DNA of 64,000 nt, from sequence record OM339718.1; one strand, written 5' to 3'. Both the position numbers and the translations under genes were made by a program. The notes beneath the pieces are model-generated. The model was not told where the DNA came from. It saw only the letters and a program-made list of their open reading frames with translations, and ran no database searches. Within the stretch, counting starts at the first letter, position 1, and each line of letters starts with the position of its first letter. This document shows, one piece after another, positions 3,658 through 36,557 of the stretch.

Positions 3658-3760
3658 AATCAAATTATAGATTTCCTATAAGTATTTATATAGAAGATCT
3701 ATAATTAGAACGAGTGAAACGAGTACGGCGTAGCCGGTTCGCTAAAGCTCACCAATCTTT
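3658..3760. repeat. Bipartite intergenic element, copy 1 (AT-rich palindrome plus GC-rich module)
   Basis: 3658-3710 matches 34475-34527 at 48/53 nt; the ACGGCGTAGCCG at 3725-3736 occurs inverted at 34549-34560. Confidence 0.85.
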
Positions 3761-3846
3761 CTAGAATCAATTCCTCGTTATCTCATACAATGTTTATTGT
3801 ATTCTCCATAGGAATTGATTCTAGACACCATACACGAGGTTTAATC

Positions 3847-4095
3847 ATGGTTTCTATAGAGAGTTTCGTAAACATTAAGAAAAGTGAAGGCTATAAGGAA
3901 GTAATACCGTTTGTGTCTGGTTATACAAGCCTTCAATTAAAGGTTAAAGACTGGGTATATTCCTTTCATGTGAATCACGATACCAAAGACGTCGAATATC
4001 GTGTTGTTACCCCATATGAAACCAAAGGGTTCATCATTTATAATTTGGATCATGTACTGGTTCGAGACGGAAAATTTTTTCGGGTGGGTGAATGA
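3847..4095 (+). CDS. Hypothetical protein
   Basis: MVSIESF start after GAGGT RBS. Confidence 0.7.
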   Translation: MVSIESFVNIKKSEGYKEVIPFVSGYTSLQLKVKDWVYSFHVNHDTKDVEYRVVTPYETKGFIIYNLDHVLVRDGKFFRVGE

Positions 4096-9503: not shown

Positions 9504-10070
9504 ATGACTATGAAAGAAGGTAGCAACGTACAGATCAATAATGATGTGATGAATGATGAAAGTCAGCGTCATTTGTTTGGTGTTGTTGGTGTGGTTTCAT
9601 ACTACAACCCAGAGGTTTGGGTTGAGGTTACTTGGCCCAATGGTACTATCAGTGCATACGAAGAGAATGAACTGATCTGTCTTGACAAAGAAGAGAAGAA
9701 ACCATTACCGGAAGTAGTACAACCAGAATCTGGATATGACGTTTCTTTTGTTGAAAAAGTAATCGAGAAAATCAATGATTATCATCGGGATTACCTTGAG
9801 CGTCATCCCCACGATTGGGACTGTTGTGGATTTTCCTCCGTGTATGTTGAATTCGGAAGAAAGAAAAAAGTGAAAGACCTTGTTTTGGGTCTCGGGTTTG
9901 ACATTGCGTATAAATCAGGTAAAGAATCTTTCTTGGAACCAAAATTTAGAATTCCGTATTGTGGTCATCAGTCTTTGACTTACAAAGAGGAAATCATGCA
10001 GATCATTTGTGACGAAATTAATAGTGTGGTTGGTGAAAAAGTTGCATATCGCAGCTCTTACATGGACTAA
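9504..10070 (+). CDS. Hypothetical two-domain protein (N-terminal SH3-like barrel)
   Basis: GVVGVV...VEVTWPNG...Y.ENEL beta pattern; GAGG RBS. Confidence 0.75.
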   Translation: MTMKEGSNVQINNDVMNDESQRHLFGVVGVVSYYNPEVWVEVTWPNGTISAYEENELICLDKEEKKPLPEVVQPESGYDVSFVEKVIEKINDYHRDYLERHPHDWDCCGFSSVYVEFGRKKKVKDLVLGLGFDIAYKSGKESFLEPKFRIPYCGHQSLTYKEEIMQIICDEINSVVGEKVAYRSSYMD

Positions 10071-10084
10071 TAAAAGGAAAAAGA

Positions 10085-10666
10085 ATGAAAGCATTTGTTT
10101 ATAAATTCAAAACTCCAAAAGACCGGAAAGAGTTTATCGGTCTAGCCAAAATTAATGATTGGATTGTTTCTAATTATCTGGTTGATTATCGTCTGACAGT
10201 TAACCAAGATAGCTTGAACAGACTTAACAGCGATGGTTATATTAGCCGTTTTATTGTTAATGGTGTATTGAAGGTGGACGAATTCAACACTATTGAGAGT
10301 GACGAATTTTATAAATATTTCGTACTTGATAAAGAGATTGAAATTGAAGATCTTCCGAAGCCTCGTCAGATTAGTGATGAGGAACTAATGGGTGGGGTCT
10401 GTAATGAGATTATTCTCAATAAAACACCAGTCGTTTCTAAGTTCGAGGGGAACAAACCCACATTTTCTGGGGATGTAACTAAACCTTTGAAGAAAAACGA
10501 CGAAGGTCTTAACATAACAGGTAACCTAAAAATTGGTAATTGTCAGTTGACACCACTCGATCAAGCAATTTTCAATCTAGTTAACACACAAGGTAAACTT
10601 TCTCAAGATATGGAAATCAAAATTTCCATTAAAAATGGTAAGGTGACATTCAGTGTATCCAAATGA
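10085..10666 (+). CDS. Hypothetical protein (YKFK family)
   Basis: 193-aa ORF with AAGGA RBS. Confidence 0.75.
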   Translation: MKAFVYKFKTPKDRKEFIGLAKINDWIVSNYLVDYRLTVNQDSLNRLNSDGYISRFIVNGVLKVDEFNTIESDEFYKYFVLDKEIEIEDLPKPRQISDEELMGGVCNEIILNKTPVVSKFEGNKPTFSGDVTKPLKKNDEGLNITGNLKIGNCQLTPLDQAIFNLVNTQGKLSQDMEIKISIKNGKVTFSVSK

Positions 10667-31020: not shown

Positions 31021-31578
31021 TTACTTTTGGAATGGGTGCCCTGCACCGATACCGACCGGGTTTTGTTTTGGTAGGATTTCCAAATCGTTTACACCAACAA
31101 CACTCATAGATGAGTAACTAAACGTTACATTACCTATAAGGGCTGGGTTTCCGTCATCAACATAGGACAATTCTATATCGTCCAATGAACTCGGGAATGG
31201 GTCATGAAACTTGAAAGTCAATACTATATTCTTTTTTGAGTTATCCAGAATATGAACCAAAATAGATCTAGGTCTAGCACCCGGTAGATGGGCGGTGGAA
31301 TTGAAAGTTCTACTATCAGTAACAGAGATCATCCATTGATACAACTCTTTATAAGATTCGAAATTTTCATCAATCAAAAATCTAATCCTAAATGGTTCGT
31401 AAATGATCTTCGAACCCGGCATAATCCCGGACGTCATCTGATTTATTGAAACCCTCGTTATATCCATTTCCATAGTTGGAAGAACAACGGATTGAGCTGA
31501 TGTTACAAAGTTAGCGGTTGTGTTTGCGTCTGGGATTTCCAGACGCATGTTTGTTATGTGTGCTTGATTATGTATCAT
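31021..31578 (-). CDS. 3: Tail tube terminator/sheath stabiliser gp3
   Basis: N(F)RLEIPD, PGSKIIYEPF.IRFLIDENFESYKELYQW, LDNSK motifs. Confidence 0.92.
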   Translation of the reverse strand: MIHNQAHITNMRLEIPDANTTANFVTSAQSVVLPTMEMDITRVSINQMTSGIMPGSKIIYEPFRIRFLIDENFESYKELYQWMISVTDSRTFNSTAHLPGARPRSILVHILDNSKKNIVLTFKFHDPFPSSLDDIELSYVDDGNPALIGNVTFSYSSMSVVGVNDLEILPKQNPVGIGAGHPFQK

Positions 31579-33437
31579 GTTGACGGTTGAACTCCATATG
31601 AATATTGCGGTTGATCTGGTCTAAATTCACCAAAGCCAGACGGTAGAACGGAATTCATACTGTTATATGTGGTATTATTTACAGCAGCCATTAAAGCACC
31701 TTCTTGACGTCGTGCGTCTCGTTCTTCCTTTTCACGTTGTTGTTTAGCTCGGAATTCTTCAACCTCTTGATTTCTTTTCTCAAGGGTTTTAAATACAGGC
31801 TCGGTTTCACCAGCCTTAATTTCATTCCCTAATTTAGATTCCGGTTGAGCTTCACTAGCATTAGCTTTCCCAAATAATGATCCAGTAAGACTTTCCCAAG
31901 CACCCTTAGCAGCATCAACACCCTTATCTAACAGCTCTGGGTTCTCTTTGGCGAAGTTATACAACTCATAAGCCATCAAGCCAGCACCAACAAAAGGAAT
32001 TGCTCTACCAGCGACACGTACCGCCATACCTGCGCCAGTTAATGCGCTTTTTGGTATAAATTTAGAGGCTGATTTTGTTGCATCAGCAGCGACAGACCAA
32101 CCTTTTTTACCAAGTTCCGCTGCCTTTGACAAAATACCAGCCTTACCTTTTGGGGTAGGAGTCTTTGTTTTAGGCGTCTCAATTTTTGCGGGTTGTCCCG
32201 GTCTTGGTTCTGGTGTGGGTGGCTTCTTTCCATCCGGTTGTGTAGTTTTCTGGGACTTCTTAGGATCCTTCGATACATCGTTTGGATTAACCCCACCAGA
32301 CGATGGTGTTGGGGTCTTACTTCCCAATCCCGGTATCTTATCAAACATCCCAGAGAACTTAGCAATTAAACCACCAACAGCGGCAGATAGGGCACCCGCA
32401 ATCATAGGGGCCAAACCAAGAACCGCACCAGATAGAACACTGATACCAGAAACAAGACCACTAAGAACAAATCCAACACCACCAATCAGTTTACCGATCA
32501 ACATGGACATCTGGATACCTTTAAGAACATCGATTAAGCTTTTATGGCGCTTTTCGTTGTTCTCTCGTTCTCTTCCATTTTCTTGTCTTTCTTTCTTTTG
32601 CTCTTGGTTATTTCTATCTGTTTTTACTTTGTCTTCTGGTTTGTTTTGTGGGATCTGTTGGAATCTAGAAGTAGCATCAGCCTTCTTCTCTTCATAAGCC
32701 GCATTCGCTTTTGCATCTAATTTCTTTTCCTTACGTGCGTTATGTGCATCAATAATAGACCCACCAACAAACTTCGTTGCATTAGCGGCCTGATTATAAC
32801 CGGGAATAGTTGATAACAAATCGTTTATGGTTCCAGTAACCATACCGATACCAGCGGACATAGTATGACCAAGTATTTTCGCTGTTGCTGATGTTTCTGA
32901 TTTCTTCATTCGATCAACTATATTAGCTTTTTTTGCTATCTCTCGAACAAATTTACCAGTTTTTTGATTTTCTTCTTTGAAATTTTCCACAAATTCACGA
33001 CGATCACCAACTTCGCGTTGTATAAATTCTTTCAAAGTCTCCCTAGTGTCTTCCTGCATAGGTTTGGCAGTTTCCCCCTGTTCTGGGTTCTGACTTTTTA
33101 CACCTTGGCTATAATCCACTAGGGGTTGTTTATTATTTAAAATGTCTTCCAGTTGCTTTCGTCTAGCTGAAACTAATTCGTTTTCAACCTTATTACTACG
33201 CTTATTATCCTTTCTGGCACCTTTTATCTGGTTCGCTAATTTTTCTTGTTCTTGTGCGACTTCCAGACTGGAATCAGAGGTAATATCATAAGACGCGGTA
33301 AGGTCTTTTGTTGAGTTGGACAACTTTTCTGTCTTGTCGTCCAACTTAAGCATCGAATCAGAAACAATATCCATAGCATCCGTGACATCTCGAACCGATT
33401 TATCAAGTTCGTTCTGTTTCTGCTTGTCAATCATCAC
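31575..33437 (-). CDS. 29: Baseplate hub/tape-measure protein gp29
   Basis: 620 aa, helical/low-complexity, hydrophobic Gly-rich centre, located among hub genes; length similar to T4 gp29. Confidence 0.8.
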   Translation of the reverse strand: MMIDKQKQNELDKSVRDVTDAMDIVSDSMLKLDDKTEKLSNSTKDLTASYDITSDSSLEVAQEQEKLANQIKGARKDNKRSNKVENELVSARRKQLEDILNNKQPLVDYSQGVKSQNPEQGETAKPMQEDTRETLKEFIQREVGDRREFVENFKEENQKTGKFVREIAKKANIVDRMKKSETSATAKILGHTMSAGIGMVTGTINDLLSTIPGYNQAANATKFVGGSIIDAHNARKEKKLDAKANAAYEEKKADATSRFQQIPQNKPEDKVKTDRNNQEQKKERQENGRERENNEKRHKSLIDVLKGIQMSMLIGKLIGGVGFVLSGLVSGISVLSGAVLGLAPMIAGALSAAVGGLIAKFSGMFDKIPGLGSKTPTPSSGGVNPNDVSKDPKKSQKTTQPDGKKPPTPEPRPGQPAKIETPKTKTPTPKGKAGILSKAAELGKKGWSVAADATKSASKFIPKSALTGAGMAVRVAGRAIPFVGAGLMAYELYNFAKENPELLDKGVDAAKGAWESLTGSLFGKANASEAQPESKLGNEIKAGETEPVFKTLEKRNQEVEEFRAKQQREKEERDARRQEGALMAAVNNTTYNSMNSVLPSGFGEFRPDQPQYSYGVQPST

Positions 33438-33614
33438 TTAGTCCTTTTCTCTCGCCTGTTCTTTAAGATCGTTTAGGTAGAGGTGAACATAAACACCAAA
33501 TTCAAAGGGGGTCATATCCTCAAGGTCCGAATGGCTCCATCCATCTTTTCTAAGCTTATATACCGTATTAAAATGATCGTATATGGTATGGTTAACAAGC
33601 GTTATGCGAAAAAA
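33438..33614 (-). CDS. 51: gp51-like C-terminal module, reachable from gp26 by a -1 frameshift
   Basis: FFRITLVNHTIYDHFNTVYKLRKDGWSHSDLEDMTPFEFGVYVHLYLND resembles the T4 gp51 C-terminus; no ATG/GTG/TTG before the late MTPF. Confidence 0.75.
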   Translation of the reverse strand, partial: FFRITLVNHTIYDHFNTVYKLRKDGWSHSDLEDMTPFEFGVYVHLYLNDLKEQAREKD

Positions 33615-34387
33615 CTTTCTACCCCTTTAAGTGTAACAATTTCTTGGTGTCCACATTTTTTACACTTTACAGGTATATTTAGAGTATGTTGGGGGAGGGA
33701 TGTTACAAATTTACCCATTTTGGTCAAAGCAACTGAATCGGCGTATTCCATAATTTCAGAAATATCCTCATACGGAATATCAACACCAACCTTAACAACC
33801 TGATCTCCCATATGAACTTCGTCAATACAGCGATTGATTAAGTTAAACAAGTCGGACTCAACTTCTACGTTGAAATATTCAACCTCGCTGATATTAGGAT
33901 ATCTCATATAAACTGTCATGTTCTCATTAAGAACAATTTTGTTATCTGGTGCATCCGACAATTTAGCGTTATTCAAGTTTACGTTTACTTTGATATCTGA
34001 GCCACAACGAATAATTTCACCATATTGGTCATATTGAACATTACCATCTTCATCAAGAATTTCGTTGGCGCAAGTAAACATAACCGGGACAGTAGGACTT
34101 GCTTTTGATAGCTTATACAAAGCTAGATAAACTGCTTCCAAGTCAAACACAGGTAAAAGGTCTACATCAACATTATCAGTTAGGATACAGTTTTTTACGA
34201 TTTGGATGATTGCATCATCGATTCCAGTATTGGCTTCGTTAGCTAACATCAACAGTTTCATTTCTTTCATCAAGAAAGCACGAACCTTGATCTTTCTACC
34301 ATCTGATAAAGTCACATTGGTCTGCTGTACGTTTTTCTGCATAGCAGCAAGAAGTACACTCTTGTCAATCGTGGTTTTGTTTGTCAT
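33602..34387 (-). CDS. 26: Baseplate hub assembly chaperone gp26 (gp26/gp51 family)
   Basis: VRAFLMKEMKLLMLA, LPVFDLEAVYL.L...SK, VYMRYP, CKKCG, ending LKGVESFF. Confidence 0.88.
   Translation of the reverse strand: MTNKTTIDKSVLLAAMQKNVQQTNVTLSDGRKIKVRAFLMKEMKLLMLANEANTGIDDAIIQIVKNCILTDNVDVDLLPVFDLEAVYLALYKLSKASPTVPVMFTCANEILDEDGNVQYDQYGEIIRCGSDIKVNVNLNNAKLSDAPDNKIVLNENMTVYMRYPNISEVEYFNVEVESDLFNLINRCIDEVHMGDQVVKVGVDIPYEDISEIMEYADSVALTKMGKFVTSLPQHTLNIPVKCKKCGHQEIVTLKGVESFFA
33608..33614 (-). promoter_or_regulatory. Predicted -1 ribosomal frameshift heptamer T-TTT-TTC
   Basis: X XXY YYZ in the zero frame just upstream of the gp26 stop; SD-like AAGGGG 7 nt upstream. Confidence 0.7.
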
Positions 34388-34474: not shown

Positions 34475-34580
34475 AATCAAATTATAAAGTCTCTATAAGT
34501 ATTTATATAGAAAATCTATAATTAGAAAGTGTGAGCGAAGCGAACAGGCGGCTACGCCGTCTCACTACGTTCGAGATCTG
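34475..34580. repeat. Bipartite intergenic element, copy 2
   Basis: See 3658-3760; GC module inverted relative to copy 1. Confidence 0.85.
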
Positions 34581-34617
34581 TAGATATGAAAAAGCCACCC
34601 CGTAGGATGGCTTAGTA

Positions 34618-35559
34618 TTAACGAATGGCTTTCACAACGCCTGTAGTACGTCTTATGATACTCTCTATAGAGTCGATGGTGTTCTCTTCACCCTTAGTAG
34701 GAACATGCACTGTAGTTGATACAGCGAATGTGACGGTAAAGGTTGCTACCTGAGAATTGTTCTCAAAATCTAGTTGAACTTCACCTACCTCTATGGGAAA
34801 GCACCCTGTATTATGTACAGTGGATTGCTTAACTCCATGACGGTCTAACGTGATGACGTCAATATCCTTTGCATACGTATTATAAAATCCAAATTGTCCA
34901 TTTCTTGGGTTGACAATTGTATTCTGCCATGTTAGCATCAAAGAACGTTCCTCATAAGAAGGGGAACAGTAAAACGTCATACTCATGGTTCCGTAGTTTC
35001 TACCTCTTACTTCGTGTCGAGGTAGTTTGTCTGTACGGTTGATTGTCGTTTCCAAAGTAGAACTAGGAAGACCGACACTCTTTACCATTAATGCTAGATC
35101 TCTGTTTACATCGTAATCAGTCCCCAAAAATCCATCAAGGATCTCTCCTGCTCCCGGTATGATCCGGATCAAGGACGGGTCCCAAGCACCAAAAATCTTC
35201 TTCATGCTAGGCGTGAGGATTTTGTGTGCTTGTCCCAAAGCAATGTCCTGAACTCTATGCCAAGCATAACTTGTACCAGAGAAAAGACTATCATTGACGT
35301 CCATCCCGCTACTTGAATCAGGAAATATTGGTAAATCCCTATCAAAAACACCATCACTGAATATAGAGGTTCGGAAATCTCCGAACCTTACAATAAACAT
35401 GTTTGGTCTAGCCAGATCAGTATTTTCAACTTTCCGCATAAACCTAGTTAGGTCGGGGATCTCGCTTGCATCCCCACCATCGTTTAATAAATCTTCACCA
35501 AACCCGATAGTACTATCTATCATACTATCTATGGTTGGAATAGGTGGTATTAAGTTCAT
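34618..35559 (-). CDS. 54: Baseplate-tail tube junction protein gp54
   Basis: DLARPNMFIVRF, DRDLALMVKSVGLP, MSMTFYCSP, FPIEVGEVQLD; ATG overlaps the gp2 stop. Confidence 0.92.
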   Translation of the reverse strand: MNLIPPIPTIDSMIDSTIGFGEDLLNDGGDASEIPDLTRFMRKVENTDLARPNMFIVRFGDFRTSIFSDGVFDRDLPIFPDSSSGMDVNDSLFSGTSYAWHRVQDIALGQAHKILTPSMKKIFGAWDPSLIRIIPGAGEILDGFLGTDYDVNRDLALMVKSVGLPSSTLETTINRTDKLPRHEVRGRNYGTMSMTFYCSPSYEERSLMLTWQNTIVNPRNGQFGFYNTYAKDIDVITLDRHGVKQSTVHNTGCFPIEVGEVQLDFENNSQVATFTVTFAVSTTVHVPTKGEENTIDSIESIIRRTTGVVKAIR

Positions 35560-36557
35560 TAGTATGATCTCCAAACGGAATTCGTATTATAGGTCTTCGG
35601 AGGAACACCAGATACAAACCGTTGAGTCGGTAGATTAATAACAGAACTCCAATCCTGCGGTTTAATCTCCATTAATGGACCCTTAATATGACCCGGTAAA
35701 TACGCTTTGATCATATGGTCTGCACCTCTCATTCCCTTAACCTTACCCCAGTTGATATTTAGGGATGTACGGTTGGTAATCCTCTCTGTTGTTGCATGTT
35801 TCAGCAACTCTTCCATAAATTCTTTACGGGCTTTGATCGGGATGTAGTGAAGGTTGAGACCCAACATCAAACCTTTGTGTTTTGCACTTAGGCCAAGATA
35901 TACGATCAGGGGGAATTTATCCCAGTACGGTAATGTTGCCTTATGTTTTGCGTCATATGCGAAAGTATACAATCGTCCAGCAATTGGTCTTGTTACTTGG
36001 TGACCACGAACGTTTTTCTTTATGAAATTGTTAAACCATTCCGTTGACTTCTTCTGAGACTTTACAGGCTCTTTTTCGTGTTGTCTTACTTTATTTCTAA
36101 AGTCAGCCAACAACATCTGATATTTTTCGGCTTTAGATAGTTTTCTTCCGCTTATTTGCGCATCTTTTAACTTCTTAGCCAGTAGAATATCTTGCTTGAA
36201 TCTTCTAAATGCCCGCTCCGTAGTTTCTTTATTAAGTCCACGTCCTTCAATATAATTTTTTAGAGTAATGCTACTCTTTTCTTTTTGTGTCAAATAATCA
36301 ACACCAAGCTCAATCCATTGTTGTTTATTCTTGTTTGGGTTTACCAGAGAATAATAAGTCTTTATTTCTTCTCTGTGTCTGCGCATTGCTCTACTGAATG
36401 TTTCATAATTCAACCCTTTTTCCTCTGCATATTTCTTTGCAGTAAGACTTGGGTTCTTTTTCTTGGCGTTCATATAATCAACACCAACATCAATCCATTG
36501 TTTTCTATTGCGTTTTTCTGTTGTGGACTCTGCACGTTCCGTTATTTCGAATATCAT
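35559..36557 (-). CDS. 2: DNA end protector gp2 with duplicated N-terminal module
   Basis: GRLYTFAYDAKHKATLPYWDKFPLI, GLNLHYIP, MIKAYL motifs. Confidence 0.95.
   Translation of the reverse strand: MIFEITERAESTTEKRNRKQWIDVGVDYMNAKKKNPSLTAKKYAEEKGLNYETFSRAMRRHREEIKTYYSLVNPNKNKQQWIELGVDYLTQKEKSSITLKNYIEGRGLNKETTERAFRRFKQDILLAKKLKDAQISGRKLSKAEKYQMLLADFRNKVRQHEKEPVKSQKKSTEWFNNFIKKNVRGHQVTRPIAGRLYTFAYDAKHKATLPYWDKFPLIVYLGLSAKHKGLMLGLNLHYIPIKARKEFMEELLKHATTERITNRTSLNINWGKVKGMRGADHMIKAYLPGHIKGPLMEIKPQDWSSVINLPTQRFVSGVPPKTYNTNSVWRSY

Follow-up and report, generated by a model that had tools for sequence, protein, structure and literature searches.

The gp26 locus and its −1 reading frame

The 64,000-nucleotide (nt) stretch of sequence record OM339718.1 analyzed here (the window) carries on its minus strand a homologue of T4 gene 26, and an earlier sequence-only reading had proposed that a programmed −1 frameshift at the end of this gene fuses its product, gp26, to a tail resembling T4 gp51. 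The region is 97–100% identical to the Ceceduovirus Aeromonas phages P19, AP1, AS-szw and CC2 (Straboviridae, Emmerichvirinae). Genes on the minus strand follow the order gp2, gp54-like, gp26, a 'hypothetical protein' of 620 amino acids (aa) and gp3, with an unannotated gap of ~165 nt separating gp26 from the 620-aa open reading frame (ORF); the finding is about this gap. The gp26 of the window is a member of PF12322 (T4_baseplate, the gp26/gp51 family), which it matches over residues 25–261 with 184.7 bits against a cut-off of 24.5, and its AlphaFold2 (AF2) model has a predicted local distance difference test (pLDDT) score of 85.7.

The gene closes with the codons AGT TTT TTC GCA TAA, and its slippery heptamer lies in the zero-frame phase and at the ORF overlap that characterize a canonical −1 signal, preceded by a Shine-Dalgarno (SD)-like element (Table 1). 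Bounded upstream by a TAA at 33629–33627, the −1 frame opens four codons before the heptamer and ends in a TAA at 33440–33438, directly after which come the GTG (33437) and ATG (33434) of the next ORF. The first ATG, GTG or TTG in this frame is codon 34 from the slip site, or ~37 when counted from the frame opening, in keeping with the 38 or so start-less codons counted in the sequence-only reading. The positions given there for gp26, the heptamer, AAGGGG and the −1 frame, all on the minus strand, were confirmed, as were the product sizes of 261 and 316 aa and the abutment of the −1 stop with the downstream start. Two other routes past the gp26 stop were ruled out, stop-codon read-through by the further stops met in the zero frame, and a +1 shift by closure of the +1 frame within 3 codons (within a few codons across loci). 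As a bare pattern, TTTTTTC is not enriched, occurring 20 times in the window versus 32 expected; what lies beyond chance is the position, phase and conservation of the heptamer, not the heptamer itself.

Table 1. Coordinates of the features at and around the gp26 locus of the window
Feature	Coordinates	Strand	Remarks
gp54-like tail tube initiator gene, upstream neighbour	34618..35574	-	318-aa ORF; weak PF06841 match; annotated gp54 in CC2
Terminator-like hairpin just 3′ of the gp54-like stop	34592..34613	-	Consensus scan: 9-pair stem, then T run; pattern match only
TATAAATA, T4 late-promoter-like octamer, intergenic, 113 nt 5′ of the gp26 ATG	34500..34507	-	
gp26, zero frame, 261 aa: short product and predicted body of the long product	33602..34387	-	PF12322 E 2.5e-54; phrog_150 E 7e-59
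SD-like AAGGGG, 7 nt 5′ of the heptamer	33622..33627	-	Read directly
Slippery heptamer T_TTT_TTC, X_XXY_YYZ phase; zero-frame stop one sense codon later	33608..33614	-	
Weak hairpin from 7 nt after the heptamer	33554..33600	-	Minimum free energy −8.4 kcal/mol in a 70-nt fold; not kept in phage 65
Predicted −1 extension, gp51-like tail: two slip codons, 56 codons and TAA	33438..33614	-	
620-aa ORF (619 aa from ATG 33434), putative tape measure or gp29 analogue by position and size	31575..33437	-	
gp3-like tail completion / sheath stabiliser gene, downstream neighbour	31021..31578	-	PF06841 E 8e-7; annotated gp3 in CC2

Coding status of the −1 frame

The 58-residue piece read in the −1 frame matched phrog_634, the gp51 family named 'baseplate hub assembly catalyst', with an E value of 3.5e-12 over profile positions 56–112 of 121. 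Searching by tblastn with the window tail returned 86 phage records, mostly of Aeromonas phages and overlapping the cyanophage records, and in every locus then examined the match began 13 nt before the annotated gp26 end. Tail identity was 83% in phage 65, 46–55% in phiAS5, Aeh1 and PX29, and 29–42% in cyanophages and in Cronobacter and Citrobacter phages. With a cyanophage tail as the query, an out-of-frame tail was found in at least 557 GenBank phage records, comprising phages of Synechococcus, Prochlorococcus, Vibrio, Rhizobium, Sinorhizobium, Methylophilales, Pseudomonas and Pelagibacter. A profile generated from 29 tails matched all 67 tails that had been left out of its building (E < 1e-5).

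Substitutions were counted in the start-less part only, that is, codons 2–32 of the −1 frame, which is 78% identical in nucleotides and 87% in amino acids between the window and phage 65. For this pair the numbers at −1 codon positions 1/2/3 were 4/1/15, while ten Aeromonas pairs gave 93/66/163 and 87 family pairs gave 327/199/578. The third-position bias, the homology to phrog_634 and the tail-profile matches therefore together indicate that the stretch beginning at the slip site is translated in the −1 frame; judged by this substitution pattern, the −1 ORF is under purifying selection from the slip site onward, without a start codon.

The same tail could be produced as a separate small protein ('gp51', 26–59 aa) by internal initiation or termination-reinitiation, with no fusion to the body, and such an ORF is annotated in 11 of 20 frameshift-type GenBank records. 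An ATG is present 3–6 codons after the site in 46 of the 94 loci first surveyed (see below), and the junction reads TAATG in KVP40-like phages. However, 48 of the 94 lack an ATG within 8 codons of the site, and in the window and phage 65 a run of 33 codons is free of ATG, GTG and TTG although the stretch is still third-position-biased; the tail column that contains M in some lineages contains L in others. A separate protein would moreover leave the invariant heptamer and the synonymous-site constraint on its first T unexplained, and in T4 the tail is fused to a PF12322 body. We consider this explanation very unlikely.

Conservation of the heptamer across relatives

In total, 104 gp26 loci were compared, including the window, 20 named GenBank phages with the frameshift layout, three Tevenvirinae (T4T, Mineola and EcS1) and 80 IMG/VR contigs with 26–33% identity to the window gp26. 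The 20 named phages were Aeromonas phages 65, phiAS5, Aeh1 and PX29; cyanophages S-H38, ACG-2014j, S-RSM4 and S-MbCM6; Cronobacter LPCS28, Citrobacter Ci1, Vibrio CZ01 and D493, and Pseudomonas Astolliot and pf16; and Ralstonia RSP15, Xanthomonas X1, Pelagibacter HTVC008M, Sinorhizobium phiM19, Rhizobium P10VF and Desulfovibrio 7757. A first survey covered 94 of the loci, which fall into 20 clusters at 50% identity and 42 at 70%.

T_TTT_TTN was found in the slip phase, 0–3 codons before the stop, in 100 of the 104 loci (TTTTTTC in 83, TTTTTTT in 16 and TTTTTTG in 1), and a homologous −1 ORF of 55–68 codons in all 101 loci outside Tevenvirinae, one of them cut by a contig end. One check proposed in the sequence-only reading was for a conserved slip motif at gp26 3′ ends together with a start-less −1 ORF; these counts bear out the motif. 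In the first survey, the zero-frame stop was separated from the heptamer by one codon in 85 of the 94 loci, by two codons in one and by three in three, and came directly after it in five. The −1 frame opens 1–36 codons before the site, with neither a conserved start nor conservation 5′ of the site. The three Tevenvirinae loci encode F-F by TTC TTT, have no −1 tail ORF and are directly followed by gene 25. The only locus outside Tevenvirinae lacking the heptamer is that of Vibrio phage D493, where the downstream gene is gp5-like and not the large ORF. In Rhizobium phage P10VF (locus piece 1001–1007) the site is T_TTT_TTG, with Leu UUG rather than Phe in the A site, which is unique among the 100 sites.

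The first T of the heptamer is the third base of a codon for S (55 loci), D (18), N (14), A (6) or G (1) and is T in 94 of 94 loci, versus a third-position T share of 0.39 elsewhere in the genes. TTT makes up 0.70 of Phe codons, and, from codon usage (20 clusters, 50% identity), T_TTT_TTY would be expected at only 0.276 (~28%) of F-F sites. One could regard the heptamer as a by-product of protein constraint in two frames (F-F in the zero frame, F-F-R in the −1 frame), with the −1 ORF expressed in some other way; F-F is indeed kept in T4 gp26, and the −1 Arg codon explains the C after the T run. That the −1 frame starts with the same two Phe codons one base earlier is, however, the outcome of a tandem slip, and the frame opening at 1–36 codons before the site, with no conserved start and no upstream conservation, speaks against another mode of expression. 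We give this explanation almost no weight.

Transcriptional slippage, in which the polymerase adds one U in the T6 run and a minority of mRNAs encode body plus tail, would yield the same protein as a ribosomal shift and cannot be distinguished from it by sequence analysis. The motif is a homopolymer, and 16 loci have T7 or longer runs, one of them T8. Nevertheless, at 83 of the 100 sites the run comprises exactly six T's before a C. This is short compared with the 9 A or T cited for bacterial transcriptional slippage (PMC5009743), and selection for slippage would favour longer runs. The X_XXY_YYZ phase is always kept, though the polymerase needs none, also where T6 is followed by G as in P10VF. 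A tandem −1 slip of two tRNA-Phe, by comparison, agrees with the phase and with the tail beginning in the same F-F. Transcriptional slippage is therefore considered unlikely.

A body-profile search of 1.84 billion cluster representatives gave 3254 matches at E ≤ 1e-3 and 2030 at E ≤ 1e-10, that is, more than 2000 protein clusters at the latter threshold, T-even-type proteins included. The best 150 of the 3254 representatives all end at most 8 residues past the body, none reaches 300 aa, and 136 of these 150 have F-F or F-L among their last residues. Homopolymers are prone to indel errors and an in-frame version is viable in T4 gp51, which would allow for a sequencing or assembly error, or a recent frameshift mutation, in a single gp26-tail ORF; but many laboratories and metagenomes contributed the 100 independent loci in which the same layout recurs, it is also seen in those best 150 representatives, and 15 near-identical Ceceduovirus records agree on the out-of-frame arrangement. 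An error or recent mutation is thus hardly credible.

T4 gp26 and gp51 as counterparts of the two predicted products

In T4, genes 26 and 51 are transcribed divergently, gene 51 heading the 51-27-28-29 cluster. Both encode PF12322 bodies: the match covers residues 1–201 of gp51 (249 aa; E 7.7e-55) and residues 1–206 of gp26 (208 aa). Along the 282 positions of phrog_150, gp51 reaches position 280 while gp26 ends at 235, and residues 147–246 of gp51 match phrog_634 positions 2–103. Aligning the 29-tail alignment with residues 200–249 of T4-type gp51 by hhalign gave a probability of 96% and an E value of 3.8e-9, and placed the slip-site Phe opposite gp51 F200. Together with the phrog_634 match of the window tail, this supports the resemblance to the gp51 C-terminus pointed out in the sequence-only reading. 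Profiles were needed for this comparison, since neither the tail nor the window gp26 matched T4 gp51 significantly in direct BLASTP. Scored with the family profile of the window-type body, T4 gp26 obtained 87.6 bits and the gp51 body 16 bits, the latter being strongly diverged.

Because gp51 consists of a PF12322 body and the tail in one ORF, the shifted product would be the equivalent of gp51, and the unshifted product that of gp26. T4 gp51 is thus a naturally occurring counterpart, in one ORF, of the product predicted from the frameshift. A full-length gene 51 was present in 1375 records, of Escherichia, Klebsiella, Shigella, Acinetobacter, Enterobacter and 44RR-type Aeromonas phages, RB69, JSE and Acj9. 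T4 gp26 and gp51 are both listed as hub assembly chaperones, and gp51 is required and yet absent from the particle (PMC3004832).

Possible stimulatory elements and slip propensity

Pairing with the anti-SD, calculated with the 9-base anti-SD core of bacterial 16S rRNA, peaks 6–9 nt 5′ of the heptamer family-wide, with a mean of ~−5.2 kcal/mol versus ~0 elsewhere, and 61–80% of the loci pair at or below −4 kcal/mol. The SD-like element is not independent evidence, because the conserved [K/R/E]-G codons encode it, T4-type gp26 included; in T4-type gp26 it may be a relic or simply reflect protein constraint. As for the heptamer itself, UUY codons in the A site are highly shifty in E. coli, and all-pyrimidine heptamers are shift-prone there (PMC4066793).

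Family-wide, the 60 nt 3′ of the site were more structured than control windows, with a mean z of −1.38 versus −0.12 to −0.74. Compensatory changes are seen in a 9-pair hairpin of the cyanophage-like cluster located 6 nt 3′ of the heptamer (alignment columns 14–22 with 34–42); 66.9% of its cells are paired, versus 31–53% when it is slid, and none of 500 shuffles reaches its covariation score, a test that is biased in favour of the hairpin because the structure was derived from the same sequences. Synonymous Ala-codon changes in its 5′ arm match amino-acid changes in its 3′ arm. Only some cluster members have it; others form a different hairpin, which is short and palindromic.

The large downstream ORF

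The ORF that follows the tail in the window may start at GTG 33437 or ATG 33434; CC2 and the protein database take the ATG, and an AAGGA within the last tail-ORF codons sits 7 nt before it. The encoded protein is fast-evolving, Cys-free and rich in K, A and E, with a coiled-coil-like N-terminus. It shares with T4 gp29 the lack of Cys, the K/A/E-richness and one central hydrophobic stretch, a likeness that is descriptive only. It falls in phrog_11300, a family of unknown function; neither it nor its counterparts match phrog_1283, which T4 gp29 matches with an E value of 8.5e-251. Pfam, NCBIfam and PDB yielded nothing but a sub-threshold SMC-like coiled-coil match, and a search of 5.8 billion proteins found five homologues, all annotated 'hypothetical'.

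The next long ORF starts −14 to +13 nt from the −1 stop in 81 of the 94 loci and 31 nt from it in one; of the rest, 11 had no long ORF found and one has its −1 ORF cut by the contig end. Complete downstream ORFs have a median length of 615 aa. In HTVC008M, phiM19 and P10VF an extra ORF of 110–142 aa lies between the tail ORF and the large ORF, and the tail stop is not abutting. One record, that of HTVC008M, names the downstream counterpart 'putative tail tape measure'.

Further observations on gp26 and the neighbouring genes

The gp26 cysteines C67, C106, C128, C187, C242 and C245 are invariant among close relatives, weak zinc-ribbon Pfam matches occur at residues 238–252, and CxxC motifs are also found in T4 gp26 and gp51. 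This suggests that the gp26 body is possibly a zinc-binding chaperone.

The late-promoter-like octamer TATAAATA has 10 matches in the window against 6.8 expected, and the match upstream of gp26 is only suggestive; this octamer and the anti-SD core used above are general consensus patterns. The consensus scan found no terminator-like site between gp26 and the next ORF, and no Rfam family was found within 33300–33800.

In the CC2 RefSeq record, the dNMP kinase gene at 9534–10265 bears the note 'gp3', which belongs to the adjoining gene, and phage 65 carries the same mislabel in the product name of its dNMP kinase gene. Compared with window positions 31575–33437, AP1 (MT713136.1) has the 620-aa ORF split, with only ~300 codons after gp26 and residues 121–620 mapping ~60 kb away. 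With the window, P19 and CC2 as reference, this suggests a rearrangement or a misassembly.

Discussion

Frameshifting in tail-chaperone genes is a textbook case of recoding. Comparison of the sequences makes it highly probable that the window belongs to a Ceceduovirus phage of Aeromonas whose gp26 gene likewise produces two proteins through a −1 shift, the longer of which would be the equivalent of gp51. Most ribosomes would read TTT TTC GCA and then stop, giving the 261-aa gp26. A minority, halted at T_TTT_TTC while carrying two tRNA-Phe, would move back by one base and go on through 56 codons of the −1 frame. The resulting 316-aa protein would consist of the gp26 body and a tail homologous to the last 50 residues of gp51. 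T4 and its close relatives have paralogous genes for the two proteins, gene 26 encoding the body and gene 51 the body plus tail. The two products may be non-structural chaperones of hub and tail-tube assembly that act on the large downstream protein, the shift setting their ratio; we infer this chaperone role and ratio control by analogy with lambda G/GT and from T4 genetics. We also infer that the slippage is ribosomal rather than transcriptional and of low efficiency. A −1 shift is the only reading that joins the invariant T_TTT_TTN, the selected start-less −1 ORF and the in-frame tail of gp51, and these features together sustain the earlier claim that the full tail needs a shift.

Several observations weigh against this interpretation. 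Independent initiation could contribute at the 46 of 94 loci that have an ATG shortly after the site. The tail ORF of Vibrio D493 (locus piece 3660–3848; 59 codons, matching the tail profile at E 2.8e-6) exists without the heptamer, the sequence there being CTT TTC with only a T_TTC tetramer. The SD-like element is also present in the gp26 of T4T, Mineola and EcS1, which have no shift. In dinucleotide shuffles over 108 nt, the downstream structure of the window was not significant (z +0.71), and no consensus structure emerged from RNAalifold for either 13 deep loci or 43 cyanophage-like loci. In E. coli, A_AAA_AAG is shiftier than U-rich heptamers (PMC5009743), and the efficiency may be low, although a weaker, U-rich heptamer would fit a minority long product as in lambda (~30:1). 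Neither the gp26 body nor the tail matched a known tail-assembly chaperone in Pfam, NCBIfam or PDB at E < 1, and the gp26 profile found nothing in PDB. The sequence-only reading had named the downstream gene the tape measure gp29; its position and size agree with that name, whereas homology to T4 gp29 was not found (hhalign 1.4%).

According to a 2016 recoding review (PMC5009743), long-tailed phages conserve the G-T shift 'except T4'. The open-access full-text literature searched yielded no account of a gp26/gp51 frameshift, though an earlier one may exist elsewhere, and none of the 20 frameshift-type GenBank records examined joins the gp26 and tail ORFs; the tail is either unannotated in them or called as a 26–59 aa ORF from an internal start. 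The sequence-only reading had stated that the shift is not an established feature of T4-like phages, and the records, the literature and the 'except T4' of the review all agree with it. We lean, with some reserve, towards the view that T4 gp26/gp51 are the missing counterparts of lambda G/GT, that the frameshift gene is ancestral, this state being placed in cyanophages, KVP40-like and Aeh1-like phages and many uncultured lineages, and that the T-even/pseudo-T-even line duplicated the gene and fixed the fusion as gene 51. If this is true, the sole stated exception to the conserved tail-chaperone frameshift vanishes, and our findings suggest that 'except T4' holds only for T4's own branch. Phages that keep the slip site make up the larger part of the T4 superfamily and include the abundant marine cyanophages and pelagiphages, and two poorly understood T4 proteins, gp26 and gp51, would be tied to a known mechanism. 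Current annotations miss or truncate the predicted protein, and the signal is simple enough for annotation pipelines.

Comparison with known frameshift systems

The closest parallel in layout is lambda G/GT, part of the conserved −1 frameshift of long-tailed phages (Levin, Hendrix and Casjens 1993; Xu, Hendrix and Duda 2004, as cited in PMC5009743). In both systems a gene among the tail tube genes gives, or is predicted to give, two products, the longer via a −1 shift, and lies directly 5′ of a large fast-evolving ORF in the tape-measure position, a layout kept despite low identity; moreover, the T4 counterparts are assembly factors and not parts of the virion. The window system differs in that its body is a PF12322 protein of 210–260 aa with conserved cysteines and not a known chaperone family, the slip site is T_TTT_TTY, the stop usually comes one codon later, and the tail has only ~56 residues. 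Given the lack of a chaperone-family match and of gp29 homology, the system is therefore G/GT-like in layout and not a demonstrated member; the likeness to lambda G-T-H drawn in the sequence-only reading stands for the layout and fails for sequence membership in the chaperone family.

P2 E/E+E′ and the Mu-type systems (cited in PMC5009743) likewise belong to contractile-tailed phages and share the two-product layout 5′ of the tape measure gene, whereas their protein families and slip motifs are presumably unrelated. E. coli dnaX resembles the site itself, in that an SD-like element precedes a homogeneous heptamer and a stop comes soon after it. In dnaX, however, the shift leads to the shorter product at ~50% efficiency with a strong 3′ stem-loop, whereas here it would lead to the longer product and no strong stem-loop is apparent in this phage. 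With T4 gp26/gp51 the relationship is one of homology, the zero-frame product of the window being a gp26 homologue and the −1 tail a homologue of the gp51 C-terminus, but T4 has separate, divergent paralogous genes and no slip site.

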